From Rhodosorus marinus CCMP1338 (Eukaryota; Plantae; Rhodophyta): a stretch of DNA of 64,000 nt. Made by a program: the position numbers and the translations under genes. Under the pieces are notes generated by a model. That model was not told the origin of the DNA, made no database searches, and worked only from the letters and a program-made list of their open reading frames with translations. Each line of letters begins with the position of its first letter. Positions within the stretch are counted from its first letter, which is position 1. Location: assembly GCA_029953675.1 (NCBI GenBank), contig JAMWBK010000004.1:868001-932000 (forward strand). The letters are read 5' to 3'. Of the stretch, positions 1 to 56,328 are shown piece after piece.

Positions 1-2
1 CA

Positions 3-1100
3 AGCCATGCCACGGTGTTTGTGAAAGCTCGAGGATCATGGACGGACAAGCTGCTGGTGAAGGTGCCAGAGGTCGGGGAGACCGTGGATATGAAATTGCA
101 CGTAGAAGGTCCATTCGGAACTCGAGCAAAGACGTACCTCCATTCTGAGGCGATGGCTATAATGGGAGCCGGGACTGGAATATGTGCGGTGCTGCCTTAT
201 GCGTTCCAGTACTCTCTAACGCATCCCGACCGCAAAGTGACTGTTGTTTGGATCGCAAGGTGTGTAGAGGACGTAGCGTGCTATCCAGAGCTCTACCATA
301 TGTGCAAGTACCTCGAGAAGAAGGGCAATTTTGATCTGAAGATGCATTTGACGCGGGAAGAGAGCACTCCTCCTGAGGTTATTGAAGTCGGAGACGAGAC
401 TGAGGTGAACCTGTTGCAGGAGGTGGAGGAGCAGATCAGCAGAGATGAGTCTTCCAACGGCGAGAAGCAGAGTCCCAGGGAGGGTCTTAATGATGAATCC
501 GTATCGTCGGGAGGGGACGTGCGTTCGACCTCCTTCGGAACGGAGAAATTGATTGAGGAGAACAGGCAGAAGGCTGCAGTCTACGGCTACTACGGGGCGA
601 TGACTCTCATTGTTGCGGTGTTTGGCGTTGGACTGTTCTCTTTCTTCTGGCCGAGAGCGCTTCAAAATGAAGAAGATATCCCGTGGGATATCTGTGATAT
701 ATGGCAACGTGAGAACCCGGAAACCGGGGAGATAGCTGTACCTACCCTGAGCGCGTACGAGATGTTCTCATGCTTTTATTGGCAGGCTATGACGATGACG
801 ATATCAGTATTGATGGGCACGCTTGCCGGTGCAGTTGTGGTGCTGGCATATCCGTTCTTTGTCCAGAGGATGGAGAGTAAGCAGAACTTTGAACCTCCAG
901 CGAGCCTTACAAGATCTGAAGTAACCACTCAGTGGATCGTCGGCCGACCGAATATCGAGGAGTACCTGGACGAGTTCAACGAACAGGCGGAATCAACATC
1001 AGTTATGGCCGCTGGACCGGAAAGGCTCGTTATCCAGATCGAGAACATGGTCGCTAAGCGCCACAGAATCGAGTTTACGAGGGAGTCCTGGAAGGTTTAG
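3..1100 (+). CDS. Ferric reductase (FRO/FRE-like flavocytochrome), C-terminal part; 5' end lies outside the window
   Basis: Open frame from the window edge. NAD-binding motifs VEGPFG and GAGTGI, two late hydrophobic segments, C-terminal MAAGPERL...FTRESWKV. Near-identical to 6202-7299, whose upstream part holds the haem-binding TM domain and FAD motif WHPFSI. Confidence 0.85.
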   Translation, partial: SHATVFVKARGSWTDKLLVKVPEVGETVDMKLHVEGPFGTRAKTYLHSEAMAIMGAGTGICAVLPYAFQYSLTHPDRKVTVVWIARCVEDVACYPELYHMCKYLEKKGNFDLKMHLTREESTPPEVIEVGDETEVNLLQEVEEQISRDESSNGEKQSPREGLNDESVSSGGDVRSTSFGTEKLIEENRQKAAVYGYYGAMTLIVAVFGVGLFSFFWPRALQNEEDIPWDICDIWQRENPETGEIAVPTLSAYEMFSCFYWQAMTMTISVLMGTLAGAVVVLAYPFFVQRMESKQNFEPPASLTRSEVTTQWIVGRPNIEEYLDEFNEQAESTSVMAAGPERLVIQIENMVAKRHRIEFTRESWKV

Positions 1101-4100
1101 GAGGTATTTGGAGGCCGCGAGAATTCGGGTTTAGATATTAACACTACTCAATTCTCCATAGCAACTTAACCGGTTTTCCTTCTCTTTGCGACACCTGCGT
1201 GCCTTGTTCGAGCGTTTCAAAGTAAAGAGAATACCAGCAATACGTCGATCGTCGCATGAGCGCTTTGTCCCAGTTCAGTTCAGTTTGAAACGATGGGCAT
1301 ATTTACTTTTACGTGTAGTCGGATTATATTTAGAAAAAGTAGCCATCCACAAATAATTATAATTCAGAAATAGCTCCTGAATCTCCATTTTGTGACCGAC
1401 GGATACCATTTTTTAAATCTACGCCCCGAGATTATGAACGAATTGCGGACAGTATGAGTTTCGGGCTGATCAGGGGGGAAGAGAGCTAGAAAAGTTTCAA
1501 TGAAATACGATTCGAGTTCGCCTTCAGAGCGCGAACTCGTTGCAACTGCTTCCCAACGACGCCTTTGGAGTCTACGGTTTTGGTTTTACCCGGTTATGGG
1601 CCCCCCCCATCGTTCTCCACTTGTTCTAGTGATTCTTTTGCTAAAAAATACTTTCCTAGACGCATCCGCACCGTCTGCGGATGCGTTTAGAAAAGCATTT
1701 TACTATCTTCAGCAGTACTATGGTTACAGTATGCGACATTAAACCATTCGTTCGTTCGTATTATTTCGGCTCACCGCGCTGCAAGCATGACTGTCATCCG
1801 GATGGCAGGCAGCTCAATGGCCGCCCCGACTGATTTTGTTGATTGAATCATTTGCCTTAACCCCCCAACGTACCAAAAAAAAACGATTTTGATTTATTCC
1901 AGTCCCACTCCCCCTTAAAACCACGGGTCGGTTTTGATATTGACGCGCACGACGTAATCGCCGGGGTTCGAATACGTTATAGTTGTCCCCCTCTGATCTC
2001 GTTCAGTATGTGCACCGTTGCTCTATACATCCCGGGATTTAACTTTCATGTACGCGTGCTGGTGCGAGCGTTTCCCCAAAAAAACGGAATCCGTAAAAAC
2101 TAATTTACGGATTCCACCTTCAACGCTGTACTCGTTGGCTCCTTGGCTTAATCCTCTGCACTTAACCCACCACCACCCTGTATCAATCCGCGCTTTAATC
2201 CTCTACGCTTGGCCGCAGACATCCAAAGGAAATGACACAACAATTTGGTGTATTCTGATGAAAAACTTTCAAAAAACCTGCCTGGCTATTGGGGCCCCTT
2301 ATCCGTCATATTGATTTTCCTCTAATGTATGGTAGTTTTAGCGATTAATACATAGTACATGTACTAGTACTATGGACGATTGGCTGTCAAAATGCGAAAC
2401 TGTGTACTTTTTCTTTTCTTTTTCCTTTCCAGTATATCCATTCTGTTATCGAATTGTTAGGAAGTAAGGTCTGGTCAAGCCGTTCAACCGGATACGACAA
2501 ATCTGCTATTATTTCCTGGTTTCCAACTCCTGTCCCATATTCAAACTCAAAAATGCTTGTTACCCGTTCCTATCAGTTCGCGAAAACGGCTATCCGGTAA
2601 AACAGACCAATGCGGCTGTCAGGTTGGCGGACTATGCTGAGACTAAACAGTCACGGCCAAAAGATTGAAATAAATCATTGGTTGCCGACCTAGACGAAAA
2701 GTTCCTAAAGAGCAGAGGTGGAAAGAGAAAATTCTTCCTATTCCGTGGCAAATTGGGGAGATAAGGATAACGCCCGAACTTGATTGATATCTTTCCCAGC
2801 TAATATGCACTTTGCTTAAACCCAAATGATTGAACTTAGTACATAGCAAAGAGGTTGTCCTAGACCGTCCGATAAATCTTATCGCGGATAGACTATTAGA
2901 AAACGAATAGGTGTGTCTGGTTGAAAATTCAGAGGAAAAGCCAGTCCGATTGCCCTGATCCGATAATAAACGATCAAGCGAAAAGCCAGAATGCAGAAAT
3001 AAGAAGTAGAATGATCATGCAGCAGAATTGCGAACCACGCAGTTTTTGTTAATGTCCCCCCAAAGACGAAGACATAGGCTCAATCAGTATTCGTTTGTTG
3101 AGTGAAGAATGAATCGGACGCCAATCGGTCGTTGTCTGACCATTATCGGACAAACCAAGTGCTTTTCATTTGATTCGGGTTCGATAATCTTATATCGGAC
3201 ACGAGCCCGAAGTTAAATGCTCATAACTATTACACGTAAGGTTAGGTCCTGTAAACTTCTATCGGTACGTTTGATATTTATGAAACACTATCGGACGGAA
3301 ATGAAGACCCTAAGCGTGGACACTGCCACATCCCACTTCAAGCTATGTTGTTGACGATATCGGGACAAAAAAAAATTCCTATCGTACCAGGAATAGACTA
3401 ACCTGAATAGGAAAGATATTCCCTTCTAGCAGCGGTCAGGTAACGGAGCCGTGAACTTGTGTACTGTTCATGAAATAGATGCGCATAGCACCGTTTTTTT
3501 TTGGTCCTGATGACGGAACACGAACGGCATTTTTCGTCTCGTGTTTGTCAAGTTTTATGCATGAGGGTTCCTTTGGGTACGTAGTTCTCACCTGACCCGA
3601 TTAAGGAGCCCGACGTCTCAGAAATTGTGAAGGCATATCATCGGCCCTTACAACTTCTGAGACGTCGGGAAGTTCCTCCCTGATCGCACTGTCTTTTACA
3701 AATTTTTTTACTATGTTCCCCCCTGGTGCAGTCAAATACCTCCTGACAATAAACCCATCACAACGCCTTCACTGCCCTACACTACAGAAGTCTATATTTC
3801 TCCAGCCCAGACACTGCTCACCCTATTCACTCAGCCGAGGAATCAATTGTACTCCGCATTGAAGGAATTTCTGCAATGGATAGTCAGTCAATACTAAACA
3901 ATTCAATCTCTTCTGACCAACATAATTCTATATATTTTCATTTCCAATCAACACATCAAAAATCAGTCAGTATCATATTAGTAAATAAATATTGTAAGAA
4001 GTATAAATAGAGAACGCCGTGCCGCGAGAACTCGGAGGGCGAATTCTCCTTTCTCTTGGTGTTGAATGTCTTGGGCAACAGATTGCCTTACCCAGGCGAA

Positions 4101-4832
4101 ACTCAATCTGTGATTTGAATCGCGTCGAGGTAACCTTTCAGAACGCCAGGGGGAATGCGCTGTTCTACCGACTTCCTTCCTCCGTGCGTCCCGCCGCGCC
4201 CCCCCACGACTCCCTCTCCCCACCCCCTTCACCTCCTCCCAGTGCTTCAGCCTCTCTTTCATTCCCTTTCAAGGGAAGTGTGCTGCTGTAGTGATGGGTG
4301 GGTAAAGCTTTGGCGATGCCGCGTTGGTCGCGATAGGGGGATTGACTGGGCCGGGCTTTACTAGCTATTGACTTGCAGTCTCACTTACCCAAGGGTGTGT
4401 CCCGGAGAATTTTGCTTCTGTCCGGGGTATCAACAATATATTCATCGGATCTATCGGAGCTCGTTTGTTTTTTTTAGTTTTTGAATTATCCACGATCACA
4501 TGTGGATACTTGGCAGTTATTCCGATACATAGCTCGGACGCGGAAAGCTCCGTGTCCTATGTTGGATCAATCGATATGCGTCGATATGTATCCCCTTATC
4601 GCTCAGGATATGCATTTGTCGTTTGACACGAGTAAGTACCACTAGAACAACTTCCACTGTTTAATACAAAAGGCATTGCATGGGGAAATAGACTTGGCGG
4701 GGATGCGTCGAGTCTCGAGCGAACGTTGGCCTTTAGTTGGTGGATCCAATAGTTGCTAGTAGTGTACTGGGCTTAGTGGGGAAGAAGAAGTTTCGGAGAT
4801 TGGATTCAGAACTCTTGACTCGTTCGGACTCA

Positions 4833-7299
4833 ATGGCATATCAAACGCAGGTTGTTAGCACTCCGCAGCCTATCGGGGGCTACTGGAGGACAACAGCTCG
4901 GCTGGGAGTTGTATTTCTGACACTGTTGATGTTCTCGTTCGCTGTATCTCACCGATTGTGGAAAGGAGGATCTTGACGTGAGAAAGACCAAGAATCCGGC
5001 GAAGGCGTCTACTTCACAAATCCCGACCCGCATCTGTGGGGAGGTTCGCTGTGGTGGGATGTCCTGTACACATGCTGTTTGTGGACCCCCCTCGGTCTTA
5101 TTGCCTTAGTTGTAACTTCCGTGGACCGCAGCGGTGACAACCTAACGCTGGAGGCTCTTGATGAGAATCTGAAGGATACGAACAAGTCTGAGAGAATCCT
5201 CAGGGACCTTCAGGCAAGAATCTGGAAGCAGCGATTCGTCGTTGGAAAGAGTTGGTATCGGACTACGTGGAGCTGGGGTGACCTTATCGCAACCTTCATC
5301 CTCGTCACGGCAAACCTGATCTGGGGATTGTTCGGGTATTTGAAAGCGGTGAACGAGCACCGGCATCACCTGGAAATGATCACGGGTCGAAAAGAATACA
5401 TGCTCACGCTTACCTATTACTGGGCCTACTTAGCCGGTACGCCGCCCCCGTCCGCAGCTTGTTCACACATCATCCTACGCGTTCCCTTTCCCCTTCTCTC
5501 GACGTTTTTGCTCAACACCTTAGCTCCTTTCGTTTTTTCTTGTTTTTTAGCATACGCTGGGATGTTCGACGCCGGGGCGGCGATACTGTTTACGCTGCGT
5601 GAGAACCACTTGATTAGAACGACGATGGGTCCCGAGGGAGGTCAATACTTCCACGGGATTAAGTATCACATCGGGTTGGGATATCTCACCTTCGCTATTC
5701 TGACAGTACATTCCTTTGTCATCCTGGGTCTCGAAATGTATTATAGCGATTACGACACCTACCATGTGCTGAACCCCACCGCTGGATGGTTGGGACATAC
5801 AGATTTTTGGGGACTCCTGGCTTGGATTGCCCTCGCGCTTATGGTAGTTGGGTCGTTGTGGGCCGTTCGTCGATGGAACTATAGGGTGTTCTACTGGTCG
5901 CATCAGCTGTACATCGTGTTCTTTTTCGCGGCAGCTGTTCATTTTCCAACCGCGATCTACCCCATCGTCGGGGCGCTGCTCTACTTCTCCCTGGACCGAC
6001 TCGCGCCTTATCTCAACTTCGCGAGAGGAGTTACCGGGAAAGCCACTCGAGTTGCTGAAGAAATTATCAGAGTTGACGTCCCGCTGGTTCGCCTTGTGAA
6101 CCAGGAGTACGCGCCGGGAGACTGGTACAACCTCAGAATCCCATCTGTCAATTTGATCAACTGGCATCCATTCAGCATAGGGTCGTTTTACCGGAACACG
6201 CCAAGCCATGCCACGGTGTTTGTGAAAGCTCGAGGATCATGGACGGACAAGCTGCTGGTGAAGGTGCCAGAGGTCGGGTAGACCGTGGATATGAAATTGC
6301 ACGTAGAAGGTCCATTCGGAACTCGAGCAAAGACGTACCTCCATTCTGAGGCGATGGCTATAATGGGAGCCGGGACTGGAATATGTGCGGTGCTGCCTTA
6401 TGCGTTCCAGTACTCTCTAACGCATCCCGACCGTAAAGTGACTGTTGTTTGGATCGCAAGGTGTGTAGAGGACGTGGCGTGCTATCCAGAGCTCTACCAT
6501 ATGTGCAAGTACCTCGAGAAGAAGGGTAATTTTGATCTGAAGATGCACTTGACGAGGGAAGAGAGCACTCCTCCTGAGGTTATTGAAGTCGGAGACGAGA
6601 CTGAGATGAACCTGTTGCAGGAGGTGGAGGAGCAGATCAGCAGAGATGAGTCTTCCAACGGCGAGAAGCAGAGTCCCAGGGAGGGTCTTAATGATGAATC
6701 CGTATCGTCGGGAGGGGACGTGCGTTCGACCTCCTTCGGAACGGAGAAATTGATTGAGGAGAACAGGCAGAAGGCTGCTGTCTACGGCTACTACGGGGCG
6801 ATGACTCTCATTGTTGCGGTGTTTGGCGTTGGACTGTTCTCTTTCTTCTGGCCGAGAGCGCTTCAAAATGAAGAAGATATCCCGTGGGATGTCTGTGATA
6901 TATGGCAACGTGAGAACCCGGAAACCGGGGAGATAGCTGTACCTACCCTGAGCGCGTACGAGATGTTCTCATGCTTTTATTGGCAGGCTATGACGATGAC
7001 GATATCAGTATTGATGGGCACGCTTGCCGGTGCAGTTGTGGTGCTGGCATATACGTTCTTTGTCCAGAGGATGGAGAGTAGGCAGAACTTTAAACCTCCA
7101 GCGAGCCTTACAAGATCTGAAGTAACCACTCAGTATCGTCGGCCGACCGAATATCGAGGAGTACCTGGACGAGTTCAACGAACAGGCGGAATCAACATCA
7201 GTTATGGCCGCTGGACCGGAAAGGCTCGTTATCCAGATCGAGAACCTGGTCGCTAAGCGCCACAGAATCGAGTTCACGAGGGAGTCCTGGAAGGTCTAG
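4833..7299 (+). pseudogene. Ferric reductase (FRO-like) paralogue disrupted by three lesions
   Basis: ATG 4833. In-frame TGA 4974-4976. TM domain with His ligands (HIGLGY, VHSF, WSHQLY, AVHF) and WHPFSI. TAG 6279-6281 where copy 1 has GAG. 2-nt deletion near 7134 (CAGTATCG versus CAGTGGATCG). Native stop TAG 7297-7299. Confidence 0.85.
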
Positions 7300-7537
7300 C
7301 AGGTACTTTTGGAGGCCGCGAGAATTCGGGTTTAGATATTAACACTACTCAATTCTCCATGGTCACCTTAACCGGTTTTCCTTCTCTTTGCGACACCTAC
7401 TTGCCTTGTTCGAGCGTTTCAAAGTAAAGAGAATACCAGCAATACGTCGATCGTCGCGTGAAACGCTTGTCCCAGTTCAGTTCGAAACTCTGTTCCGAAA
7501 CGTCATCAAAATAACTACCTTCGTCTCAATCAAGACT

Positions 7538-7899
7538 AGTCGTTATCTCCCGGCTGCGGGGGAGCGCCGTGGATCTGCCGCCGCCAGCATGAGACGCCGC
7601 AAAGAGATCAAATACGCGGGGGCTTTGTCTTCCCCTGGTGTTCGTGCTTCGGCACTAGCACATCGCTTGGTACCCCTGATCATTGAGTGCTTTGGGTTCA
7701 TGGACTCTGTTGGTTCTCGCTGGCTTCGGGAGTTGTTCCGCGAACGCCCTGACCGTCTTCAATCGTTGTTTACCCGCTTAAGTTTCCTGCTGTGGCGCAT
7801 GAATGCCGCTTTGATGTTGGAGGCGCGAGTACTTCGCCGCGCTTAGTCTTTTTTTCCCCTCGGGGTTTTTTTTTCAGCCTCCGATTAAACCATTCATTC
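7538..7899 (+). mobile_element. Family A RT/RLE non-LTR retrotransposon, 5'-truncated 3' end with 9-bp TSD
   Basis: Encodes the family A C-terminus (...LVPLIIECFGFMDSVG...LEARVLRRA*), 3' UTR and TTC(A/G) tail. ATCAAGACT at 7529-7537 and 7900-7908. Confidence 0.9.
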
Positions 7900-8200
7900 A
7901 TCAAGACTCAGCACCCAACACCATTCCAAGGAAAAAAATTAATCATATATTAATAAAAATATCTCTATATGAATACAACATAGTTAGTTTTAGGTGAATC
8001 GGAGTATATTTAGAAAATATAGCCCACAAATAAACTCGAATTCAGAAGTAGGTCCTGAATCTTCAATTTGTTACCCACGGGTACCATTTTTTAAACCTAC
8101 ATCCCAATTACGCACCTAATCATTATATTGAAGGAATGTGAGTAATCTCAGACTGAAAGAAAAAAGCCCAAGGGGAAGAAAATGACTGATTGCGGCGAGG

Positions 8201-8760
8201 TGTTTAATCGGAGACTGAAAGAAAAAACCCCGAGGGGAAAAAAAAGACTAAGCGCGGCGAAGATCGCGCGCCTCCAACATCAAAGCAGCGTTCAGACGCC
8301 ACTCACGCAAGGAACTTAAACGGGTAAACGAGGACAGACGGTCAGGGTGTTTCGCCGAACAATTCCCGATGCCATTGAGAACCAACGGAATCCATAAACC
8401 CAAAGCACTCATGACCAGAGGTACCAGGCGATGAGCTAGAGCCGAAGCACGAATCCCTGGGGAAGACACAAGACCCCCGCATATTTCAACTCTTTGCATA
8501 TTGGCAGGCGGCAAATCTACAGCGCTCTCCCGCAGCCAGCAAACAGCGACCAGCCTGAGGATTAGGAACAGCAAGATCAACGTGCATCGTACGTCGGCTA
8601 TCGTCACAGCTGACCACGAGGTCAGCAACAGGGAGTTCATCATTCTGATAGTCTGCGACAGGCAGGGGCTTCTCACGTTCAATTTCAAGACCGGCTTGCC
8701 GTACGATAGGTCGAAGTTCGCGGTATAACAGGCTCAAGATCCGCGTATGTCGTTGCAACA
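8201..8760 (-). mobile_element. Family A 3' fragment, older and degraded
   Basis: Reverse complement of the A 3' UTR and RLE region (ADLVVSCDDSRRTMHVDLAVPNP) with frameshifts. A further degenerate tail lies at about 8150-8185. Confidence 0.85.
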
Positions 8761-10112
8761 TTGGGCTTGTGACATTGGAAGGTAATTGGCAATTACCGGT
8801 AATACCGAGGGTAAATATTTCGAGGGTCTTTGTGGTAATCCCGACAATTACGGGCCGCCTTAGTGGAAAAATCGACTTTTTTCACCTCCCAAACGGTAGC
8901 GAAGGACCTTCGGAAGGTTAACCTTTTTTGTTGGAAGTTTTGGAGCGTTTTTGACGAGTTTATTCATCTGGTTTAGACGCGCGAGGCGCTGCACTGCATG
9001 CTACCGACTGTGAATTAAGAACTTTTGACTTTGGCGGGCTGAGTTGTTTCATTCTTGACGGGTTTCTCACATGGGTGAGTGAAAATTTTGTATGAGGTAG
9101 TTAGAGTGCGATTTGAAAGACTTCACGGCGTCTCCTTCAAGAAGGGCCTCGTCGTCCTTGGCAAAAGTTTTGAGAGCTTGACTCTTCCCCGCACCATCAT
9201 CATCTGTACCTGGGTCGTAGGTGTGCTCCAGCCTGTAGTTGCCCGCGGATCTTTCAGATTCATCGACAGATTCATGGTCAGATTCATGGTCAGATTCATC
9301 GTCAGCTTCATCAGACTCAGCACCATCGTCGGCAATATTTATCGTGGGGACAGAATCATGTTCCCGAGCAACACCTCCCGACATGCTTTCGTTGGACAAC
9401 CTCTCCGATCCTTACGCTGGTGAGGTTACCCGCTTGTAGTAAGCCGTTGGGGTTCCACTTTCATGCTCAAGGTTGGTCTTTTCCACCCTGGGCCCAAGGA
9501 TGTAAGCCCCAGCAGAGTTGTTTCCAAGTCAGCCATGATTCGGAAGGAAACGGCCCAATCTTCAGATCAAAATTTTTGACCTGATCCCGGAGCTCCTCTC
9601 TCCAGGAACTTTTACTTGTTGCTTGCTCGCTAAACAATTTTTGGTACAGATTCTCCACGACCAAGCAAAGACAAACACGTTGTTTATGACGTGGATATAT
9701 GCCCACTCCCCTCAGGCAGGGGTCAAGCATCCAAGAAGCGTATGACACTGGACGAAGTGCGTCCATCATCCGCTTCTCTATTGCGTTTAAAAAATGGGTG
9801 GCTCGATTTTCCTTTCCGATGTTTCCGTCCTCTTTTACTATTCTTTGTTGAAGGGGCGCCGATCAAACCTGTATCAGCACCAGCCTGGTATTCCTGCGAT
9901 ATTGGTCCATTCTCTCCGCAATCTTTGCAATTCTTGCAGATTCGACCCCCGCAGGTTTGCACCCTCAATTTCAGCCCCGAATCGCGAAATTGGTGATGAA
10001 TTGAGAACCCCTCTTAAGGCGGGGCAAAACCGAGAGATGCTTCGTCGGGTCAGGCCCTCGACTCCGTTTGCAGAACAACATGTTTTTTTGCATTGAATGA
10101 AGGATTTTCATT

Positions 10113-10449
10113 GAACGAACGAATGGTTTAATCGGAGGCTGAAAAAAAAACCCCGAGTGGAAAAAAAGACTAAGCGCGGCGAAGTACTCGCGCCTCCAAC
10201 ATCAAAGCGGCATTCATGCGCCACAGCAGGAAACTTAAGCGGGTAAACAACGATTGAAGACGGTCAGGGCGTTCGCGGAACAACTCCCGAAGCCAGCGAG
10301 AACCAACAGAGTCCATGAACCCAAAGCACTCAATGATCAGGGGTACCAAGCGATGTGCTAGTGCCGAAGCACGAACACCAGGGGAAGACAAAGCCCCCGC
10401 GTATTTGATCTCTTTGCGGCGTCTCATGCTGGCGGCGGCAGATCCACGG
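10113..10449 (-). mobile_element. Family A 3' fragment, young
   Basis: Nearly identical to 7560-7899 in reverse, with (GAAC)n tail at 10113. Confidence 0.9.
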
Positions 10450-10452
10450 AGC

Positions 10453-10535
10453 AGGAATCGAACGAACGAATGGTTTAATCGGAGGCTGAAAAGGAATCGA
10501 ACGAATGGTTTAATCGGAGGCTGAAAAAAGGAATC
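10453..10535 (-). repeat. Two ~30-nt family A terminal micro-insertions separated and flanked by AGGAATC
   Basis: AGGAATC at 10453, 10492 and 10529, enclosing two copies of (GAAC)1-2 GAATGGTTTAATCGGAGGCTGAAA(A)n. Confidence 0.85.
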
Positions 10536-10927
10536 AGGGAAACCAGAAATCTGTGTTTATTTATCATTTTTATATTATTTTAAGAAATGTGTTTAGAACT
10601 CGAGAAAATCAAGTTCCGTAGGAACAGTTTGTAGCGAGACAGACAGACAGATGTCAATCTTTTGGGTCAAGTGCTGAGATTTTCTCGATATGCTTCATCC
10701 GTTAAGTGGTGGAAATGGAGAAACTATCAGAACACGTGTATGGGTCTCGGATAGCAGGGACCCCGAACGACTTGAGAACTTTCCCCCAGGAACTGTACCG
10801 AGACTGGATCCCGCTTGGCGGGCGCATTACCCTTCCACATGGCCATTTTCCGCTCATCAAAAACGTCATCCAGTTGCGAGGAGAGAGCCTCAGGTAAGCA
10901 CCCCTCACTAAGACCTCGTATTGAAAC

Positions 10928-11395
10928 CAGCGCACCTAGGGCTATGCTAGTAAAGTCCTCCGCCGGGGGGCCGCGGCTTCAGCCCTTCGAAGAGTTAAGG
11001 AACGACGGTATGCTGAGAGCATGGCCAGTCTGCCTTGCGCTGAGGGTCGCTCTCACCGGTTCCAGCCATTCATTGTGGAAAGCTTTGGTCACGTCGATAA
11101 GTCGGGTTTAGAGTGGTTGCGGAAATGTTTTGCTGAGCATCCTACTGAATATTTGGCGCTCTTGAGGCGTTTAAGTGTCTCCCTTTGGCGATATTCCAGC
11201 GACATGCTTTCCGAGGCGCGCCATCGGCGCCTGGGGTTGCATACTTCCCTCCCTAGTTATTAGTTCATCTTCACGCCTTGCGTAGCGCTTCAGGCTATGC
11301 TAGTAAAGTCCAGTAAAGTCCTTGCTAGTAAAGTCCTTGCTAGTAAAGTCCAGTCCAGTAAAGTTCTAGCATGCTAGTAAAGTCCAGTAAAGTCC
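10928..11395 (+). mobile_element. Family B RT/RLE non-LTR retrotransposon 3' fragment with expanded tail array
   Basis: Encodes ...FQPFIVESFGHVDKSGLEWLRK...HTSLPSY*, then the 3' UTR and AGTAAAGTCC repeats at 11302-11395. An extra tail piece is embedded at 10940-10958. Confidence 0.9.
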
Positions 11396-11439
11396 AGTTC
11401 AACCGCCGGATCCCAAGTAGTCAAGGCGTTGACGAAATG

Positions 11440-11760
11440 ACCATCGCCGCGGGTTGGCTTCTCGTGTTTGCACCAACAGTCAAACCACCCAACCCTGCAG
11501 CCATAGCTGGCTGGTGATGAAGGAAGCCATGATCCTCCTCCTCCAAAGCTGCAAGTCCAGCATCAAGCAAGGAACCAAAGACCTCTCGCGCTCGGGCAAG
11601 TGCAGGAAGGGCCAGCCAAGGCCTCCAATTCGGAAGGCACAGCTATCGTAGAAAGTAGTTAGCATCCGATAGGCACTACAGCGAAAGATTAGAAACGCCG
11701 CTTGCACGAACCCCTCTGGCAAGTAGACACAGATCGGCGTGAAGATGCTCGTGTTTGGCC
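11440..11760 (-). mobile_element. Degraded fragment of a CRE-like RT thumb region (family uncertain)
   Basis: ORF 11480-11722 contains AFLIFRC and RIGGLG, parallel to IALFRFC and RWGGLG in family C. Confidence 0.5.
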
Positions 11761-11968
11761 AAACGGCCTCGTAAGGCGTTCACAGTAAAGCTAGATGTGC
11801 CGACGAGGACACCGAATAGAGTGAATTCCTCTGGGTTTGCCAAATATCCTGAAATCACGAGGGAACCGTGACAGGAGTACACCTAACACCACCCCAGAAA
11901 TCACATTTGCGCTCTCCGAAAGCAGGAAATCCTGGACAGGCTTGTGCAGAAAGCCTTTGAGGTTAGTA

Positions 11969-12027
11969 CCAAGTGGGCTTGTACCAGTGACAAGTGGGCT
12001 TGTACCAGTGACAAATGGGCTTGTACT
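11969..12027. repeat. 21-bp tandem repeat (CAAGTGGGCTTGTACCAGTGA), about 2.7 copies
   Basis: Read directly from the sequence. Confidence 0.85.
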
Positions 12028-12299
12028 CATGCACAGAACACGCAGAGCGTGAATTTCACCATGCTAAGGCGGATGAGGTCGTGCCAAGGAGGGAGGGGGG
12101 GGAGAGGGGGCAGGACTCTCTTGAGAATTTTACGCTTTTTGTTAGCAGATTACTACCCATATTCACCTATCGAATGCTCCCTTGAAGCTCCACGTAGATG
12201 CCTTCTGTGTTCAGAGGGGTCCGGTAGAACTACCAGGTCTGGGACACCCATGGGTCAATCGTCAGTACCATAGATCTTTGTATTGACGGAAATTAGAGG

Positions 12300-13080
12300 G
12301 GGGTTCTTTGGAAGTAGGACTTGCTGACCCTTCTGGTGCTGGCGTGGTGGTTGACTTCGTGACCTTCCTAGCATGGGATATGAGCTCCTCTCCACCGACG
12401 AAATCCGCTGCAGGTTACGCCTTCGTTTGGGACTCCCGATACCTGGTCTTCGCACTACTCCTGAATTCACAGTCTGTGCCAAACCAAACGCTGCGGATGG
12501 GACTCAACGTTTATTCCACTGTTCTACTTCAGCGAGGAATTGGACTCTGCGCCATAACCGCATTCGTGTTAAACTCGCGCGTCACCTCCGCCGGTGGCAC
12601 CATCATGATCTTCAAGTCGAGCCTTTCGGGTTTTTGGAGGGTAGTCGTCTTCGACCAGACATTGTCGGTCGTCATCACCACACAGGCAATCAGTACGTAA
12701 TTGAAGTCAAGGTGGAATCCCCACTACGAGCCCACCTCCTCGTTCGAGCCGCATGTCAAACTGGTTATGCCGCAGCGATCGCTGAAGCCGGGAAACGAGC
12801 CAAATATCGGGATGACATCGCTGACCACAACGACTTTCAATTTGTACCCTTCACGGTTTGGTCGACTCGGGCAAGCGGCCCAAAACTTCATTGCCGAAAC
12901 TACTGCACATCTCGAGCACAAAGCGGACGCGCAAACGCTCATTCGCGTGGACATTAATCGAGAGCTATGCCGAGGCACGGCTCGCTTGGCGATCCACGCC
13001 ATGCGCAAAGATAATCATGTTCGGACGCTGTTCCCTGTAGAAAGGAATCTTCTACCCCACTCTGGGGTCTCCTTAGCCTG
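12300..13080 (+). mobile_element. Family D (relative of family C) restriction-like endonuclease region, frameshifted
   Basis: LRLRLGLPIPGL, zinc-knuckle remnant (FHC...LRHNRI), RPDIV...YVIEVKVESP (PD-(D/E)XK core), FVPF then FGRLG in the next frame. Alignable by eye with 29269-30306. Confidence 0.8.
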
Positions 13081-13084
13081 GTTT

Positions 13085-13760
13085 GATTGGCTTTATTGGC
13101 TTTATTAGCATTGACTTTATGAGCCAATGCTATGCTAATAAAGCTGGCGTTATTAGCATAGCCTACAGCGCTACGCAAGCCGTTAAAAGGAACTAAGAAC
13201 TAGGTAGGGAAGCGTGCAAACCCAGGCGCCGATGCCGCGCCTCGGCAAGCATGCTGCTCGAATATCGCACAGAGAGACACTTAAGCGCCGCAAGAGTTCC
13301 AAGTATTCAACAGGATGCTCAGTAAAACATTTCCGCAACCACTCCAAACCCGACTTCTCCACGTGACCAAAGCTTTCCACAATGAAAGGCTGGAACCGGT
13401 GGGAGCGGCCCTAAGCGCGAGGCAGGCTGGCCATACTCTCAGCATACCGTCGTTCCTTCACGCGGCGAAGGGCCGAAGCAGCTGCTCCCCGGTGGCGGGC
13501 GGCAGCCGTGAGATGGGCGCTTGCCACAGGGCATGTAATCTCGAGGTCAACATATGCTGAGCGTCTGGCGGCAGCATCGGAGACGAGGAGATCAGCGATA
13601 CAGCGGGGCGGCGGTGCCCTATCCGAGACAGATCTGGATAGTTCCGATTCCACCTCAACCGTATGCCCTACCCGAGTCAGAAATTCGCTGAGAATGTACT
13701 TGAAGCGAGTGTGACGCCTCGTACGAAGACCTCTCAACAGTCCACATGAACCTAAGAAGC
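13085..13760 (-). mobile_element. Family B 3' fragment (RLE domain) with variant tail AATAAAGCC
   Basis: RRHTRF, ADLLVSDAAARRSAYVDLEITCP, ESFGHVEKSG and the B 3' UTR. Confidence 0.9.
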
Positions 13761-13762
13761 CT

Positions 13763-16229
13763 GGCTTTTATTGGCATAGCCTGAAGCGCTACGCAGGGCG
13801 TGAAAAGGAACTAAGAACTAGGTAGGGAAGCGTGCAAACCCAGGCGCCAATGGCGCGTTTCGGCAAGCATGCAGCTCGAATATCGGCACAGAGAGACACT
13901 TAAGCGCCGCAAAAGTTCCAAGTATTCAACAGGATGCTCAGTAAAACATTTCCGCAACCACTCCAAACCCGACTTCTCCACGTGACCAAAGCTTTCCACA
14001 ATGCAAGGCTGGAACCGGTGGGAGCAACCCTAAGCGCGAGGCAGACTGGCCATACTCTCAGCATACCGTCGTTCCTTCACGCGGCGAAGGGCCGAAGCAG
14101 CTGCTCCCCGGTGGCGGGCGGCAGCCGTGAGATGGGCGCTTGCCACAGGGCATGTAATCGCGAGGTCAACATATGCTCAGCGTCTGGCGGCAGCATCGGA
14201 GACGAGGAGATCAGCGATACAGCGGGGCGGTGCCCTATCCGAGACAGATCTGCGTAGTTCCGATTCCACCTCAACCGTATGCCCTACCCGAGTCAAACAG
14301 TCGCTGAGAATGTACTTGAAGCGAGTGTGACGCCTCGTACGAAGACCTCTCAACAGTCTGCATGAACCTAAGAAGTGGTAACCACAAGCATCGATCCGAC
14401 TCTCACATCCCTGACAGAAATACGGCCGATTAGAGTGCCACGGAGCTTGTGGCAAACCCAGATAGTTCCGTGCCGCAGAGCGGAACTGAAAGGCATCGAG
14501 ACGGTGACCCAGTGACGAAGGCAGCGTGGTTAACCACAAGTGCGACAGGTTGCCTCCCATGCCGCGGAGGCGAGCGGTGGTGGTAGGCGGTGTGAGGGGA
14601 GAGTTGCGCAAGATTGCCTGAGCGGCACTGTGTTGGTCCCGGTTAGGCTAGTTGAATCATATCTGTGCGCGAGCTTCACAATCGCCTCATACGCGGGTAA
14701 TCTGGAACAGGTGACCCGGGGCTGGCTTACCCCTCGTCTGCGAGGATTCTGTCGATGGGAGAGTCCCAGTACGTCCCCATAACAGCTCTTTCCAGGAGCG
14801 GAACTTGGATCGGTTGTCGTCCGGCACGTCTTTGCACTTACTGAACACCTGTTTCAGAGCATCATAGATACTCAAAAGCGGTGGCGGAAGGGTCGCGGGG
14901 TCTTCGCTAGTCAGTGCTCTAGCCGAAAGGCAGGCACTTCGAATCCGAAAACTCACCAAGGCGCGAGACGCGGTAGCCCAGGAGGCGACCGCCGCCACCC
15001 GAAAAATGCCGTTTTCTCGCTCCGCGTGAAGTTTCAACGGGCTCCCTGCCATCTAGTCTCCGAGTCTTTGGTGAACTTGAGGGGCTCGAGCATCATGGCG
15101 TCGGTTTGGGGAGTGACAACTGCGTGCAAGACTCCTCCGAACGAGTTTTAGCACGCCTTAAGCAGCTCACTGACGCCATTGAGCGCCTACCGGACAGCAT
15201 GCTACAATCTCAGGGGTGCCCAGCAACGTCACGTCGTCCTGGTAGGCACAGATTCGAAGATCCGGCGACTCAGCCGCCAGTCGCAAGAGCACGATTTGCA
15301 AGGCACAGGCGTGAAGCACAGGCCCACAAGGATCACCCTGTTGAACGCCAGTACGTGCTACAAAAACAGAGCCCTGCGTTGTCAACTAAGGGAGGCTCCC
15401 CCTCCGTAAATACCGGATAGGAACGGCCACGCCTCCGGGAACACCCTTCGAATCACCTCCAAAGCATGCGTCCGCGAGACGGTGTTGAACGCGTTACGGA
15501 ATTCAACCACCAAAACGCCCCAATATGGCCTACTGGCTCGCTCGAGCTTTGATCGCATGAGTGATCAGTTCGCAACCCCCGGAAAATCCCACCCCTACCT
15601 GCCAAGGCGCCATAAAAGCTGTGACTCGCTGGCGTAGGCGCTGGCATAGCCACCTCCCGGCGAGCTTCCGTAGACTCTCGACCATGCCGATCGGCCGGAG
15701 ACGCGGGTGTGCCGGCTCGTGGTCAGGTTTCGTTAGCAAGCAAAGCTGTGCCCGTCGCAGATGGTCCCAAGGGGCAGACGCACCCCCTGCACCCTGGAAC
15801 AGCGTATTCAGGATCTTTACCACCGCGCTCTGGCCAGGCTTGCTCAGGGCCTGTAGTAATTCCGTTCGTAGCCCGGAGGGTCCAGGGCAGCGTCCACGAC
15901 GGGAGGTCCGGAGCAAATCCTCCAGATCAGACTCACGGAGCGTTAGGTCGATGCGAAACCTGGCCAACTCTGGACGGTCCAAAAGTGCCTCGAATTCGGG
16001 GAGCAAATCCACGACGGGAACAAAGCCGACATAGTCTGGTCGAGGCTCTCGTCGTACGGGAGGACAGGCGCCTGGCCCTCCAAGACCCGTGCCGCTTGAC
16101 TCAGGTCGCCAACCGCCACCAATTTCTGCACTCGAGTCGTCAGGGCCATACTGGTCCAGTCCGAGCCCGACGGACAGAGTGCTCCGATGACGCCAAGCAG
16201 CTTTGCTGCAACACCTCAAATTCCCCGTT
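13763..16229 (-). mobile_element. Family B copy with RT and RLE, internally deleted and carrying an inverted segment at 15055-15210
   Basis: RT motifs PGPSGLR, LRPIG, WQVGVG..GGCE, DFRNAFN, GVQQGDPCGP, YQDD. RLE knuckle CQGC...HFLGSC. Segment EHHGVGLG...MLQS reads on the plus strand. Confidence 0.88.
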
Positions 16230-16232
16230 CAG

Positions 16233-16452
16233 GGCTTTGCTAGCATAGCCTGAAGCTCTACGCAAGACGTGAAAAAGAACAAAGAACTAGGGAGGGAAGC
16301 GTGCAAACCCAGGCGCCGATGGCGCGCCTCGGCAAGCATGCTGCTAGAATATCGCCACAGGGCGACACTCAAACGCCGTAAAAGCGCCAAGTACTCAGTA
16401 GGATGCTCAGCGAAACATTTCCGCAACCACTCTAAACCCGACTTATCCACGT
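16233..16452 (-). mobile_element. Family B 3' terminal piece (~220 nt) lodged inside the N-terminal part of another B copy
   Basis: HVDKSGLEWL...LPSS, 3' UTR and GCTAGCAAAGCC tail, with B N-terminal coding sequence on both sides. Confidence 0.85.
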
Positions 16453-17750
16453 GACGGTGTCGCGAAGGTTACGCTCCAGGCTCGTGAAGATGAAGTCCAG
16501 GGTGGTCCCCGCCACTAAGAGCTCTCCGCGAGGTAGAACGACAGGCGGAATCCTGCCACGGAGGGGAAGCGAACCGCCTTCCAAAGAAATCCATCGCCGG
16601 AGCCAACTCCGCAGGCGCGTACGCCAGATGCCCCAGTCTCCGCCCTCCTTCAGGACATAAGACTGCAGGTCCATGGGCTGCGACCTCGCAGCCGTGCCCG
16701 GAGAGCCAATCGTGCTTCTTCCCCTTAGACCCGGGTGAGTCGGTCCTCGCTCGTTTGCCTCCTAACCTCACCAAACTGGTCAACCGGCCACTCCGCGAGG
16801 CTCGCGGGATGGCTCCCCCGGGCTTTAACCAAGTAATAGGGGCGTTCTCGACCGACATACCCTCCGGCTCCCCTTCCTCGCCACTCGCACTGGAAGTAGT
16901 GCTGGGAGCGAAGCTCTCTAATACTCCCAAACTCCGTAGCTCTCCCTTGTGACTGGAGGTCAGCACAAGGTGCCTCTCGCGGTCGAAAAAGGTAGAGGCG
17001 GCTGCGCGCAGATGGCGTGGACCCGACGCGAAACGCTCCGAAAGTATCCGCTCCATGCGATGAATGCGAAGCCAATGGATGGCTGCGGCTTTCACTTTGG
17101 TCTCGTGCTCAGAGAGCCCTGCTGTTTCTCCGGGAGAGAGCAAAGTGCCCGGAAAACGGTCGAACCCGAAATGCAGTACGACCTGGGGTTGAGAACGCAA
17201 CCAGCGGGCGCTTCAGGTCACTGCTCGGTAGGCTTCGCCAGTAGGGCCTGCAGGTACTTTGCCGCGTTCGCTGTGACCCTGAAGAGAACATCCCGACGCT
17301 CGTAGTTGGCAAATATGAAGTCTTCCCGACGGCAGCCCAAGGATTCCGCGAAAATGTTCCGGAAATCGCGCATGTTCGGCACCTGGCCACGGGTTGTCTG
17401 CGGCCAAACGTTCCGCCCCCACAAAAATTGCAAGGTCGTGTCCGTGGTTCCAACATTAGCCTCTTTCTGAGGCTAAAATCTTATCATTGCCGCCGTACGG
17501 GCGGTGGTGGTGCACTTGGGGCGATCACGCACTCCTGCCTGGGCCGGACGCTGTTGACCCACGGAGGGCCTGCCCAGGACGGGAAAGTCCGCTCCGGCTG
17601 AGGGAACATTCGAAGGATGAGGCAGCTCCGCACACCTCTCCGAAGAGGCGCCAGCCGCGGAACCATATTTGTCACCTCCAGATCCCAGGAGCCGCCTTCG
17701 ACTGTCCCGGGACCGGTTGTTGTTGATTGACCTGGGGAAGTTGACTGTCG
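16453..17750 (-). mobile_element. Probable 5' and N-terminal region of family B
   Basis: MDLQSYVLKEGGDWGIWRTRLRSWLRRW matches DLKGHVDQVGGDWGVWRPQFQSWIRRW at 41517. Further broken ORFs (16469-17200, 17218-17433) lie upstream. The outer boundary is uncertain. Confidence 0.6.
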
Positions 17751-21352: not shown

Positions 21353-24300
21353 TCAACCATAAACTGCGTTTAGTTTCTTAACCTCAGATTTGTTGAAGAT
21401 AAACCATCGAGTGGGACCCGCACTCCTGTCGTCTTCCCAAAATTTGAATTTTGTGTTTCCCGGGGCCCTCAAAGCGTTCACGGTGAAGTTGGAGCCCACG
21501 ACGACGATTGCGCGAAGCGGGGATGGCCCGGAGACAGAGTCAGCGGAAACTTTGACCCCGGTTGGCATCGTAGAAACTGAAACTGTTGACGTCTGAGGCC
21601 GAATCTGCCTGGTTTCGACAAATGTCGTCTTATCGCTCAAGAATCCTGCTTGAAACTCTAGGTAGAAAAAGTCTCCGTGGTCTTGAACTTTGTACGAGCC
21701 ATTCGCCTTTTGAAGGATCGTCTGCTCCAAGTGCTCGTGGCAGACTGTCGCGCAGTGAACCAGCAACACGCGGAGATTGTACTCCTGCGGCGGAACTGGC
21801 GCTCCTCGGTAGTCGAAGCACTTCACGTTGTAGTTGATCGTATCACCAATTTTAAATGTACTAGGCATCCGTCCGAAGGAGCACTGACGCTTCTTGGTCG
21901 TTTGAGGCGCACAGTCAAACGTGGCGCTGGACAGCTGCGCAGCTCCCCCAGCCCCCGTCGCCCGTATCGTAATCTGATCCAAGCCCCTGACGTTGCAGTC
22001 CATGTTCTTTCCCGCACTGGGATTGACAGTTCCGCTGTTGCAAAGGACCCTACCAGAGACACCTTTGACGGCCACCGCAATATTTCTGGCGCCGTTGACG
22101 GCATCGACTCGCATTGTTAGCTTGGCGCATTTGCCGGGAACGAGGTAGTCCACTTCCGCTACCGGAACGATGTTAATGCGCTTGCCTTCTTCGATTTTGT
22201 TGAACCGACCGAGGGGCCTCACAGTCCTTCTGATGAGGTTGAACAAACCAACTTTCTGGCCCACCGCTTCTTCCAGCCGAGTCCTAAATGTCCGAACGAT
22301 GCCGCTCGTCAAGGGGTTGCCGTTCAAATCCTCTGCCCTCTTCCTGACCATCAGTTTGTACTCCGTATCTGCCAGGAGCTCCTGGCTAGGTCTGATGAAC
22401 ATCCTCCTCTGGTCGGCGCTGAATGAGGCTCGGAAACCAATGTCATATCCTCCCAAGGCTATGGGTTGCACTAGTTGAGCAGCATCCATTGTGCTCTGGA
22501 CGTCCATTGGCTCGCTAAACACAACCTCGATCGCTTGCTTCACACCGATCCGACCTGCCGGAAGCACTTGCTTGATTTTCGGATTGCTTCTATCGAAAGC
22601 ACCGCATCTAAACCTTGCGTCCGCCCAGCTTCCAATCCCAAGGGCCGGCTTCGTCCTTTCCGTCCGCTTAGTCACAAGCGCCACTACTTTGGCTCCCCTC
22701 ACGTCCACGTCTATCGACATCCCCCTTGCCGTTCTTGTTAGCGGTCTTGCGTTCCGGAATACCCGCTTCTGACCCTTCGAAGAACTCCACGTCCTCACCT
22801 CGAAGAACACCTCGACTGGTACGAACACGGTCCTGACATCGTCAACCCCGATCACAGCCTGCAGTCGCTTGCAATTCGGCGGAAGAGCCAATCTAACCAA
22901 TGAGTCCGCTACCACGGCTACGCCCTTGGCGAATTCTTCTCCCCGAATGGAGATCGGTGGAATCCTAGCAACGCCTTCAACCTCCTGCTGCCTGTCCCTG
23001 AGCACGTCAACCTGTTTCCTTCCGTTAACAGCCTCAAGCCATTTCAGGTCAGATACGAACCGCGAGAATCCAGTACCGGTTGTGAATCTCGACCTAAACG
23101 GGTTGCGCATCTTTCGGCCTTGGGTGTCCATCAAGTTACGTGACACGACAATCTCGTAGTCAGCCTTCGCTGAGAGCATTCCGCGGGGACTAATCACAAC
23201 GGAATGCGTGGAAGGCAGATAAGTCAGTTTGCTACGAACCAGCTGGTTCCTACTCCTGTTCCTCAGTTTTATGTTCTTCCCGTTGACAGCCTTCGGATTA
23301 ATTCTTTTCGAAAATTTTACTGTGAGCATGGAAGTTATCTCAACCTCCTTCGCGCCCTGCGGCGGGGTCATCTGAACGACTGTCGGGCGACTCTTGTCGA
23401 TTTGAAATCGCACCCTGAAGATCTTCTGAGCTCCAAGTGAGACGTAGTAGAGCCACCCATCGGGTCCTTGCTTAATCTGAACCACGCCAGCTACGTCAGA
23501 AATCATTGTTTGGGGCTTTCCTTTCATACCCCCGGCCTCACTGGGATTGATCAGTTTGATCCACCTGAAAGTGAAGTCCGCCACGGCAACCCTATTTCGA
23601 ATTGCTTGCGGCCACTTTGTGGAGTCGAGGCGAAGCGCGCCCGTCACAGCAGTCCCTTCGTTCCGGGCATAGATCCACAACGCCCGCTTCGTACCGAGCT
23701 TGCTTTTCCCCGTTCGGATGTCTGCACAGAGCTTATTGCCGTGCACTTTGATGTTGTCCACGTCCCCTTCTACACATGGCCAGCCAAAATTCAGACCCTT
23801 CATACCTCGGAATACAGCCTCCTTCGTCGCATATCCAACTTGGGGCACCAGTGGAGTCCTGAATACTCGATCGTAGCTGATTCGGAAAGGGTTCCGCAAC
23901 CCATAGTTCCATACCTTGGCTGCGTTTGGCCCTCCACCACGGAACGGGTTTGATCTACAGGGAGCACCGGTTCGGGTTATACATAAGATCTTACCACCCA
24001 TAAATTCGAGGTCTTGGGTTCGGAACGCGGTATCCTCAAAGTCGGGAGGGGCTTGAGCATCACCCAGTGATATGAAGATATTACCAGAGGGGCTCATAGC
24101 CAACCCACCCATGTTGTGGTGCTTACTATCCAGGCATATTACGTCCTTGCTGAAGATCGACTTGTTCAACCCGCAGCCCGTTGCGGGCGGGACTTGCTTA
24201 CCAATCAAGACGACTTCACCAAAGGCTCTAGTGAGATCTCTTGATACTCTGAAACGCACGATTTTCCCAGATTTTACACCGTCATCGGGGGTGTTGAGTC

Positions 24301-46091: not shown

Positions 46092-46173
46092 TCCAATACA
46101 TCACCCCGAGAGCATCGACTACTTTTTTTTGCGCTGAAGGCGATGCTAGCTGAAGGCAATGCTAGTTACCCGG

Positions 46174-46221
46174 TTCATCTTCACGCCTTGCGTAGCGCTT
46201 CAGGCTATGCTAGTAAAGTCC
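46174..46221 (+). mobile_element. 48-nt family B terminal micro-insertion
   Basis: TTCATCTTCACGCC...GCTAGTAAAGTCC, flanked by AGTTACCCGG (46164) and AGTTACCTGG (46222). Confidence 0.85.
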
Positions 46222-49955: not shown

Positions 49956-50149
49956 AGATCCGACCACGGGGCTTAATCCCCAACTCAGGTTCCTAGCAAA
50001 TTCCTAGCTTCAAGTGAAGAGTAGACTGCCAAATCTCAATAAATCTAGTTTTTGTTGAATGCACTCGTGACTATGCTCAATAGAATGGACTGGACTTAAA
50101 CTACCATAGCCTGAAGGGTTACGATAGTCTGGGGTTTTCTTCTCCGATC

Positions 50150-56273: not shown

Positions 56274-56328
56274 CAAGTTGCGATTGAGGAATCATTATGC
56301 GAACCTGAAAAGTGAGCCCAGTACTACT

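Follow-up and report, generated by a model that had tools for sequence, protein, structure and literature searches.

Stacked 3'-terminal segments in the tails of an R2-like, non-site-specific LINE of the red alga Rhodosorus marinus

Introduction

Rhodosorus marinus is a unicellular red alga. In a 64-kb stretch of one of its contigs (JAMWBK010000004.1 of assembly GCA_029953675.1, positions 868,001-932,000; hereafter the window), a short copy of a non-LTR retrotransposon, belonging to a family that we call B, is followed by an irregular array of units that repeat the element's own 3' terminus. An initial annotation likened this tail to the product of telomerase, and proposed either that a reverse transcriptase (RT) had repeatedly realigned on the end of the RNA, or that the tail itself had been the target of repeated, very short insertions. 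We asked what kind of element family B is, how its tails are built in other copies, and which mechanism best accounts for the array (hereafter the focal array). A literature search found no description of Rhodosorus retrotransposons, nor of such elements in red algae; family B is probably undescribed, and the phenomenon reported here is of a known kind.

Sequences examined

About 20 independent B-type 3' ends were read. They come from the window, from ~5 kb upstream of it (L007), from 21 kb of another contig (L008) and from transcripts (L001, L009 and L010), a sample that amounts to ~95 kb of one genome (the 64-kb window plus ~30 kb) and three transcript contigs. Positions 5416-21696 of L007 are the same DNA as window positions 1-16281 (100% identity, same contig) and are not independent of the window. 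A metagenome scan with the conserved 20-mer GCGTAGCGCTTCAGGCTAKG returned a single unrelated, bacterial-looking match and no extra B copies.

Results

Family B is a LINE with an R2-like reverse transcriptase and a restriction-like endonuclease

Family B is a single-ORF non-LTR retrotransposon (LINE) of R. marinus with an R2-like RT and a C-terminal restriction-like endonuclease; its full size is estimated at ~3 kb from truncated copies. The RT domain was recognised as RVT_1 (E=3.9e-16), and its best matches among solved structures (PDB) were R2 proteins (E=2e-11), ahead of L1 ORF2p (3e-8), all matches being LINE proteins. The B ORF at 46159-46869 carries the motifs CQGC..H..C, RRH, ..IADLLV.. 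and VDLAI, and the C-terminal domain of this copy and of its relatives displays a CCHC motif and an RH / E / (P)D / D / K pattern. When this domain was turned into a profile with window copies among its members, it matched residues 989-1147, the R2 endonuclease domain, with E=3.3e-13. The B C-terminus combines a PD-(D/E)xK restriction-like endonuclease with a CCHC motif, as in the non-LTR group bearing such an endonuclease (RLE). N-terminal zinc fingers are absent from B and its relatives, though visible in P0023-type proteins.

The endonuclease region is deleted in the longest B copy of the window, 56329-58354 (-). An endonuclease-less B family, suggested by this copy without the nuclease core, was ruled out by the 46225-46937 copy and the relatives, which encode the nuclease. 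A Penelope-like element, considered from the tandem arrangement of copies, was also ruled out, RT and C-terminal nuclease both being LINE/R2-like. Finally, the ~700-nt units at 46225 and 14464 are not a SINE-like partner of B, being 5'-truncated B copies that encode the endonuclease domain.

B copies of 45, 224, 355, 609, 700, 704 and ~2026 nt share one common 3' end, are truncated at their 5' ends and have no LTRs. With the target site duplications (TSDs) described next, family B shows the 5' truncation, the TSDs and the lack of LTRs that are footprints of target-primed reverse transcription (TPRT).

Family B inserts at AGT-like sites without site specificity

The two clear B TSDs, of 13 bp and 11 bp (Table 1), both begin with AGT, as a remark on a CT^AGT site in the initial annotation had anticipated. 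Of nine right flanks read in the window, five open with AGT and nearly all with A. The flanks differ from one another (AGTTCAACC, AGTTTCAGC, AGTAGTACT, AGTGGCAAC, ATTGAATG, AGGCTAAGG and others) and have only A, AG or AGT in common. Since they are otherwise unrelated, B is not site-specific, and nothing in its flanks corresponds to the one defined, repeated target of R2, R4, NeSL, CRE or Utopia.

A 224-nt 5'-truncated B fragment at 16232-16455 (-) lies inside the B copy 15210-16683 (-), with ~95 nt of its host missing; this insertion is a target deletion rather than a duplication.

A putative small hairpin and single-stranded tail at the end of the B RNA

The B RNA is predicted to end in a 7-bp hairpin and, beyond it, a single-stranded tail of 11 nt (U plus AGUAAAGUCC). 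The hairpin is present in all B subfamilies, and in each the repeated unit starts 1 nt after it. Across 15 B-type 3' ends, 92% of cells are paired, the observed values being reached by 22-39 of 500 shuffles, and two pairs change on both sides, one from A-U to G-C and one from G-C to U-G. The covariation in this alignment lends the hairpin no more than moderate support. When the 97-nt 3' end was folded alone its energy was not significant (z = -0.13), and the small hairpin was the sole conserved part. Rfam at gathering thresholds gave no match in the window, hence no ribozyme or known RNA at the B ends.

The tail unit varies by subfamily (AGTAAAGTCC, AATAAAGCC, AGCAAAGCCC, AATAAAACC and others) around an A(A/G)(U/C)AAA core found in all. 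The repeated unit is almost exactly the single-stranded tail beyond the hairpin, and in the irregular units the restart point lies 2, 4, 5 or 9 nt farther 5', within the hairpin's 3' arm. We conjecture that the hairpin could serve as a boundary for the RT. The transcript contigs L001, L009 and L010 run through B tails into the flank or the next copy. The terminal motifs of family B and of two further families, A and C, all contain A(A/G/T)TAAA, which resembles a polyadenylation hexamer, 2-4 nt from the element end.

The focal array consists of eight stacked 3'-terminal segments

The focal array closes a 5'-truncated B copy of ~355 nt, whose ORF (11021-11263, stop at 11263) ends ...FIVESFGHVDKSGLEWL... 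(Table 1). An exact search of the window located perfect AGTAAAGTCC units on the + strand at 11302, 11312, 11327, 11342, 11376 and 11386; the window holds 11 matches to this unit where 0.11 are expected by chance, a count reached in 0 of 100 shuffles. Together with a base-by-base reading, which found no poly(A) in the focal tail, the search confirmed the description given in the initial annotation: 11302-11395 holds six perfect units, one variant and one partial, with three units restarting upstream (ATGCT- or TTGCT-), and the tail is indeed not polyadenylated.

The array parses into eight stacked 3'-terminal segments of the B RNA. After the main copy these measure 10, 15, 15, 5, 10, 19 and 10 nt, the seven further segments spanning 11312-11395 (coordinates checked by script and with TRF, which reports periods of 10, 15 and 30). 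All segments end in ...GT(C/T)C, that is, at the element's terminus. Extra bases stand at junctions (T at 11322, T at 11337, TAGC at 11367-11370), a 12-nt palindrome, CTAGCATGCTAG, occupies 11366-11377, and the 25-nt blocks 11297-11321 and 11371-11395 are identical.

The copy belongs to a young subfamily: 11071-11315 and 56325-56569 are 99.6% identical (1 base different in 245), and 27513-27562 and 46173-46224 are fragments that match this subfamily without a mismatch (100%). Because these three 99.6-100% identical fragments carry one unit each (at 56329, 27559 and 46221), the focal array was not inherited, and this comparison places its origin at or after the insertion of the 355-nt copy. At the other end of that copy, the stacked segment GGCTATGCTAGTAAAGTCC (10940-10958) is identical to the final 19 nt of five B copies.

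Table 1. Coordinates of the features discussed. Positions are those of the window unless L001, L007 or L008 is named.
Feature	Position	Strand	Details
3'-terminal B segment, 19 nt, GGCTATGCTAGTAAAGTCC	10940-10958	+	directly 5' of the 355-nt copy; stacked at its 5' junction
5'-truncated B copy, ~355 nt	10957-11311	+	BLAST against other B copies; end of endonuclease/C-terminal ORF plus 3' UTR
7-bp hairpin, GCGUAGC / loop GCUUCAG / GCUAUGC	11280-11300	+	RNAalifold consensus; ends 1 nt before the repeated unit
Multi-unit tail, 8 segments	11302-11395	+	focal array
Segment 1, GGCTATGCT+AGTAAAGTCC	11293-11311	+	end of the 355-nt copy
First tail unit, AGTAAAGTCC	11302-11311	+	single-stranded tail past the hairpin; has AGTAAA hexamer
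Segment AGTAAAGTCC	11312-11321	+	base-by-base reading
Segment TTGCT+AGTAAAGTCC	11322-11336	+	base-by-base reading
Segment TTGCT+AGTAAAGTCC	11337-11351	+	base-by-base reading
Partial unit AGTCC	11352-11356	+	base-by-base reading
Variant unit AGTAAAGTTC	11357-11366	+	base-by-base reading
Segment TAGC+ATGCT+AGTAAAGTCC	11367-11385	+	base-by-base reading
Last segment, AGTAAAGTCC	11386-11395	+	base-by-base reading
AGT at right-hand junction	11396-11398	+	read as target sequence pairing with tail AGU
Flank, AGTTCAACC...	from 11396	+	right of focal array
Older subfamily array, 9-nt unit (3-5 units)	13080-13154	-	AATAACGCC, AGC, inverted TTTATTAGCATAGC (13129-13142), ATTGGCTCATAAAGTC, AATGCT+AATAAAGCC, AATAAAGCC, AATCAAACC
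Head-to-tail pair of 5'-truncated B copies	13150-14464	-	704 nt (14464-13761), then ~609 nt (13758-13150)
Stand-alone 5'-truncated B insertion, 45 nt, one unit	27515-27559	+	TSD AGTTTCAGCGCTC, 13 bp, at 27502-27514 and 27560-27572
3'-terminal B segment, 49 nt, one unit	46173-46221	+	directly 5' of the 700-nt copy; 52-nt match 46173-46224, including AGT, 100% identical to young subfamily
5'-truncated B copy, ~700 nt, encoding endonuclease domain	46225-46937	+	tail AGTAAAGTCC (46915-46924), AGTAAAGCC (46925-46933), AGCC (46934-46937), then AGT
5'-truncated B copy, ~2 kb, RT domain, one unit	56329-58354	-	TSD AGTAGTACTGG, 11 bp, at 58355-58365 and 56318-56328
Multi-unit tail (3-5 units)	L007 2917-2960		AGTAAATTCC AGTAAAGCCC A-AGTAAAGCC AGCC AGTAAAGCC
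Multi-unit tail (3-5 units)	L008 20562-20588		AATAAAACC ACC AGTAAATCC ATCC ...
Multi-unit tail (3-5 units)	L008 13191-13267	-	includes ACC partial
Multi-unit tail	L001 1189-1207		transcript contig
Two stacked 3'-terminal family A segments, 33-36 nt	10457-10529	-	upstream of truncated A copy 10117-10452
Family A 3' ends	near 7890, 10117, 51450, 59910 and 63520

Stacked tails recur across family B

At least two units are present in about 7 of the 20 readable B tails, and the number of units ranges from 1 to 8 across the ~20 3' ends. The initial annotation had stated that other B copies carry one or two; most copies are indeed single-unit, but further complex B-type arrays of 3-5 units were found in the window, in L007 and in L008 (Table 1). 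The B tail is a short tandem repeat of variable copy number with no poly(A), as at the 3' ends of stringent-type LINEs. The focal array is one case of family-wide stacking in independent B insertions.

Among the partial units, AGTCC occurs at 11352 and at 50087-50091, AGCC at 46934 and in L007, ACC and ATCC at L008 20562-20588, and ACC again at L008 13191-13267. Every partial unit (7/7) is a copy of the last 3-5 nt of its left-hand neighbour, so that the duplications always end at the element's terminus. If duplications of 3-5 nt fell at random in a 10-nt unit, the chance of this terminal phase in all partials would be ~1e-5 to 1e-6, as a rough estimate.

Repeated tails also occur at two other LINE-like 3' ends of the window. 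A diverged B-like end at 50087-50124 (-) reads GGCTATGGT AGTTTAAGTCC AGTCC, and a LINE-like end at 26355-26376 (-) has CCAGTAACC repeated twice.

Stacked and inverted pieces also occur at 5' junctions

B 5' ends abut another B tail in seven cases (10958, 13761, 46221, L007 2265, L008 13806, L001 29 and L009 1020). At L007 2148-2265, two longer copies enclose a stack of two 3' UTR pieces (~53 and 44 nt), and the variants read in order GCGCTGTAGG, GCGTTTCAGG twice, and GCGCTTCAGG. As the pieces carry GCGTTTCAGG and their neighbours GCGCTGTAGG and GCGCTTCAGG, they were not copied from the adjacent DNA. The segments of this stack stop short of the terminus, at GGCTATGCT, GGCTAT and AGTAAAGC.

In the older array, 13129-13142 is the reverse complement of the B 3' end. 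Family B and its sister family A display the footprints of R2-type template jumping: stacked pieces at 10940-10958, 46173-46221, L007 2173-2265 and, for family A, 10457-10529; the extra T and TAGC at junctions; the inverted piece at 13129-13142; and the palindrome at 11366-11377. We infer from these footprints that the RT made the stacked, extra-base and inverted pieces.

Inverted duplications of 99% identity are present in two LINE copies, 27244-27514/27617-27887 (spacer 102 nt) and 53009-53438/53506-53935 (spacer 67 nt), and may be snap-back cDNA products. At the centre of the former lies the 45-nt B fragment. Directly before the 49-nt B fragment, GCTGAAGGC(G/A)ATGCTA occurs twice at 46133-46165; 13 of its 16 bases are like the part of B running from the hairpin loop to the 3' arm, and these units may, on this resemblance, be stacked pieces from another subfamily.

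A sister family stacks its 3' ends as well

The C-terminus of family A is homologous to that of B, and its 3' end is ...GATTAAACC plus a (RTTC)2-3 tail. The junctions of its stacked pieces at 10457-10529 each read ...GTTCG|ATTCC, and a 62-nt duplication of the A 3' end occupies 8143-8260. The 3'-end stacking is the same phenomenon in a second family. The 3' end of family C is ...CAGTAAAGC (TTACGG)2.

Discussion

How the focal array may have been made

Taking the element type, the TSDs, the parse of the array and its recurrence as directly observed, we favour RT stuttering and template jumping during TPRT as the origin of the focal array, with a probability of roughly 0.6. That an RT repeatedly restarted on the RNA 3' terminus, as the initial annotation had suggested, is the best-supported explanation, given that the segments end at the terminus, that the partials are terminal in every case, that stacking recurs, and that sibling copies have a single unit. 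The endonuclease would nick a target whose first sense-strand bases are A, AG or AGT, and the freed target 3' end, complementary to AG(T), would pair with the AG(U) that follows or starts a tail unit. The RT would then copy the 10-nt tail, and the nascent cDNA would often detach at the base of the hairpin or shortly inside it and re-engage the RNA 3' terminus. Re-engagement through a 2-3-nt AG(U) match would yield perfect 10-nt units and AGTCC/AGCC partials; alternatively, the cDNA could gain one base as it jumps, namely the T in front of TGCT. Each abortive round would add one copy of the terminal 5-19 nt, so that 11302-11395 would correspond to seven rounds, followed by a run-through giving the 355-nt copy and by a final jump adding the 19-nt piece at 10940-10958. 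Jumping at any cDNA stage would also generate head-to-tail pairs, 3' pieces at 5' junctions and inverted (snap-back) pieces.

Some observations count against stuttering. A search allowing up to 3 mismatches found no TSD for the focal cluster, nor for the clusters at 46937 and 13080, and a single insertion event at the focal cluster is therefore unproven. Moreover, the segment ends of the L007 stack, lying off the terminus, imply that internal microhomology switching takes place too and that the process is not purely one of terminal re-initiation.

The array might instead have grown in the DNA after a copy had landed with one or two units, by replication slippage or unequal exchange as in a minisatellite. 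Slippage yields tandem duplications like these, of 3-5, 10 and 15 nt, and could produce short ones ending at the terminus as soon as there are two units; it may have contributed, for instance by a single DNA-level duplication behind the two identical TTGCT 15-mers, and the identical 25-nt blocks could mean a larger one. We nevertheless consider this origin unlikely, because at least five duplication steps would be needed within 84 nt while the adjacent 245 nt differ from the sister copy by 1 base, because 7/7 partial units end exactly at the RNA terminus, and because it leaves unexplained this terminal phase, the extra or inverted bases at junctions and the L007 stack segments, which are of a different variant from the neighbouring DNA. 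Repeated self-targeting, in which a ^AGT nick site inside the B tail would receive serial truncated insertions of 5-19 nt that add target-duplication copies, was the other proposal of the initial annotation. It would require ~8 independent events at one site, with none in three same-subfamily fragments; no separate 11-13-bp duplications accompany the 5-19-nt pieces; and stacks are also found where the acceptor is no tail (L007 2172 and 2225). We regard it as quite unlikely, even though both clear TSDs begin with AGT, another B tail directly adjoins seven B copies or fragments, and the 355-nt copy stands between two AGTAAAGTCC units that are readable as a 10-bp TSD.

It is very improbable that the source B RNA already held the whole array and was copied once. 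The read-through transcripts of B tails (L001, L009 and L010) do mean that a genomic array could be transcribed, but no other copy with this array exists in the 64 kb plus ~30 kb of genome covered, and the single-unit tails of the three nearly identical fragments speak against it as well. An assembly or consensus-polishing artefact in the repeat is extremely improbable: the data come from a single assembly, of which L007 is no independent part, being the same contig, but the array is shorter than 100 nt, irregular and non-periodic in content, embedded in a 3.19-Mb contig, and accompanied by similar arrays at several other loci.

Comparison with UnaL2, R2 and telomerase

UnaL2, an eel element of the L2 clade, and other stringent LINEs share with B a short repeated tail, variable in copy number, where reverse transcription starts, behind a conserved 3' hairpin that is putative in B. 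CR1, L2 and the Drosophila I factor, with its (TAA)n, also belong to this group of stem-loop plus short tandem-repeat tails. The proposed stutter of B resembles the slippage of UnaL2. However, UnaL2 has a 5-nt unit (UGUAA, usually in three copies) and an AP-type endonuclease, whereas B has a restriction-like endonuclease and usually a single unit of 9-10 nt, nearly its whole single-stranded tail, with restarts 2-9 nt into the hairpin. The combination of an AP-type endonuclease with an L2/CR1-clade RT is not found in B; its endonuclease being restriction-like, B works like UnaL2/CR1-type elements without belonging to their clades.

Among solved structures, the RT and endonuclease domains of B are both closest to R2 proteins. 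The R2 RT initiates by template jumping, engaging RNA 3' ends through 0-2 bp of pairing; it appends +1 untemplated bases and jumps serially over at least 10 templates (PMC8594491), and R2 insertions in cells show tandem 5' junctions, with upstream 3'-end pieces, as well as snap-backs (PMC11371274). In contrast to B, R2 targets one specific site in 28S rDNA and jumps in vitro after reaching the 5' end of its template; B is not site-specific, and its RT would have moved off the template when only 5-19 nt were copied. In the RepBase scheme quoted in PMC4640811, RLE-bearing LINEs comprise CRE, R2, R4, NeSL and HERO, of which HERO inserts mostly non-specifically. HERO and the other RLE clades have, like B, an RT and a C-terminal CCHC/PD-(D/E)xK endonuclease; B belongs with the RLE-bearing LINEs, placed by its domains, and is HERO-like in lacking site specificity.

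Telomerase recopies a short RNA segment after a 2-3-nt realignment, as is proposed here for B, and in both cases a structural element flanking the template could set a boundary. Unlike telomerase, B has a LINE RT, mostly single-unit copies, uneven units and an interstitial array, the latter ~0.88 Mb into a contig of 3,191,941 bp and set between ordinary unique flanks. Identical units added from a fixed template are not what the array contains: its segments are of 5, 10, 15 and 19 nt with extra bases at junctions. The telomerase-like framing of the initial annotation thus proved overstated. The length of the stacked 3' segments varies from 3 nt up to hundreds of nt, with no fixed-template cycle; stacks also occur at 5' junctions and in family A, and in one of them the segments end off the terminus and derive from a different B variant than the flanking copies; and the RT matches, among solved structures, only LINE proteins (R2 and LINE-1 ORF2p). 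The array is telomerase-like only by analogy. A true repeat-addition cycle of the B RT, with the hairpin as boundary, realignment over 2-3 nt of AG(U) and repeated addition of AGTAAAGTCC to a DNA 3' end, seems to us decidedly improbable. If it did exist, it would be a LINE enzyme doing telomerase's job on a 10-nt template, a tractable LINE-telomerase intermediate, and possibly a means of healing broken ends in R. marinus.

Abortive initiation and serial jumping of this kind are known chiefly from in vitro work and from engineered R2 insertions. Should the stutter reading be right, the B tails would be unusually clear in vivo footprints of such behaviour by an R2-related RT, in the form of 3-19-nt stutters, stacked 3' pieces at 5' junctions and snap-backs. 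They would also document an active, non-site-specific RLE LINE lineage in red algae, and the short hairpin-plus-tail RNA would offer a compact substrate for studying how a LINE RT chooses and holds its start site. The tails leave the current understanding of LINE mechanisms unchanged, and annotators should be warned that they are neither satellites nor telomere-like repeats.

Other features of the window

A Ty3/gypsy-type LTR retrotransposon at 58760-62532 (+), with gag, protease and an 827-aa pol ORF, adjoins the truncated B copy 56329-58354. A segmental duplication (1-1281 versus 6202-7483; L007 3812-6696), with 94-99% identity, covers the region of a NOX/ferric-reductase gene, and another paralogue sits immediately 5' of the window. 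A ferric-reductase gene of the window has 90% identity to a protein of R. marinus. A pair of intronless paralogues, at 21353-24649 (-) with 1098 aa and at 30799-34683 (-) with 1294 aa, encode glucose/sorbosone dehydrogenase, Big_5 and NPCBM domains; their architecture looks bacterial, and a horizontal transfer into the red alga is possible.
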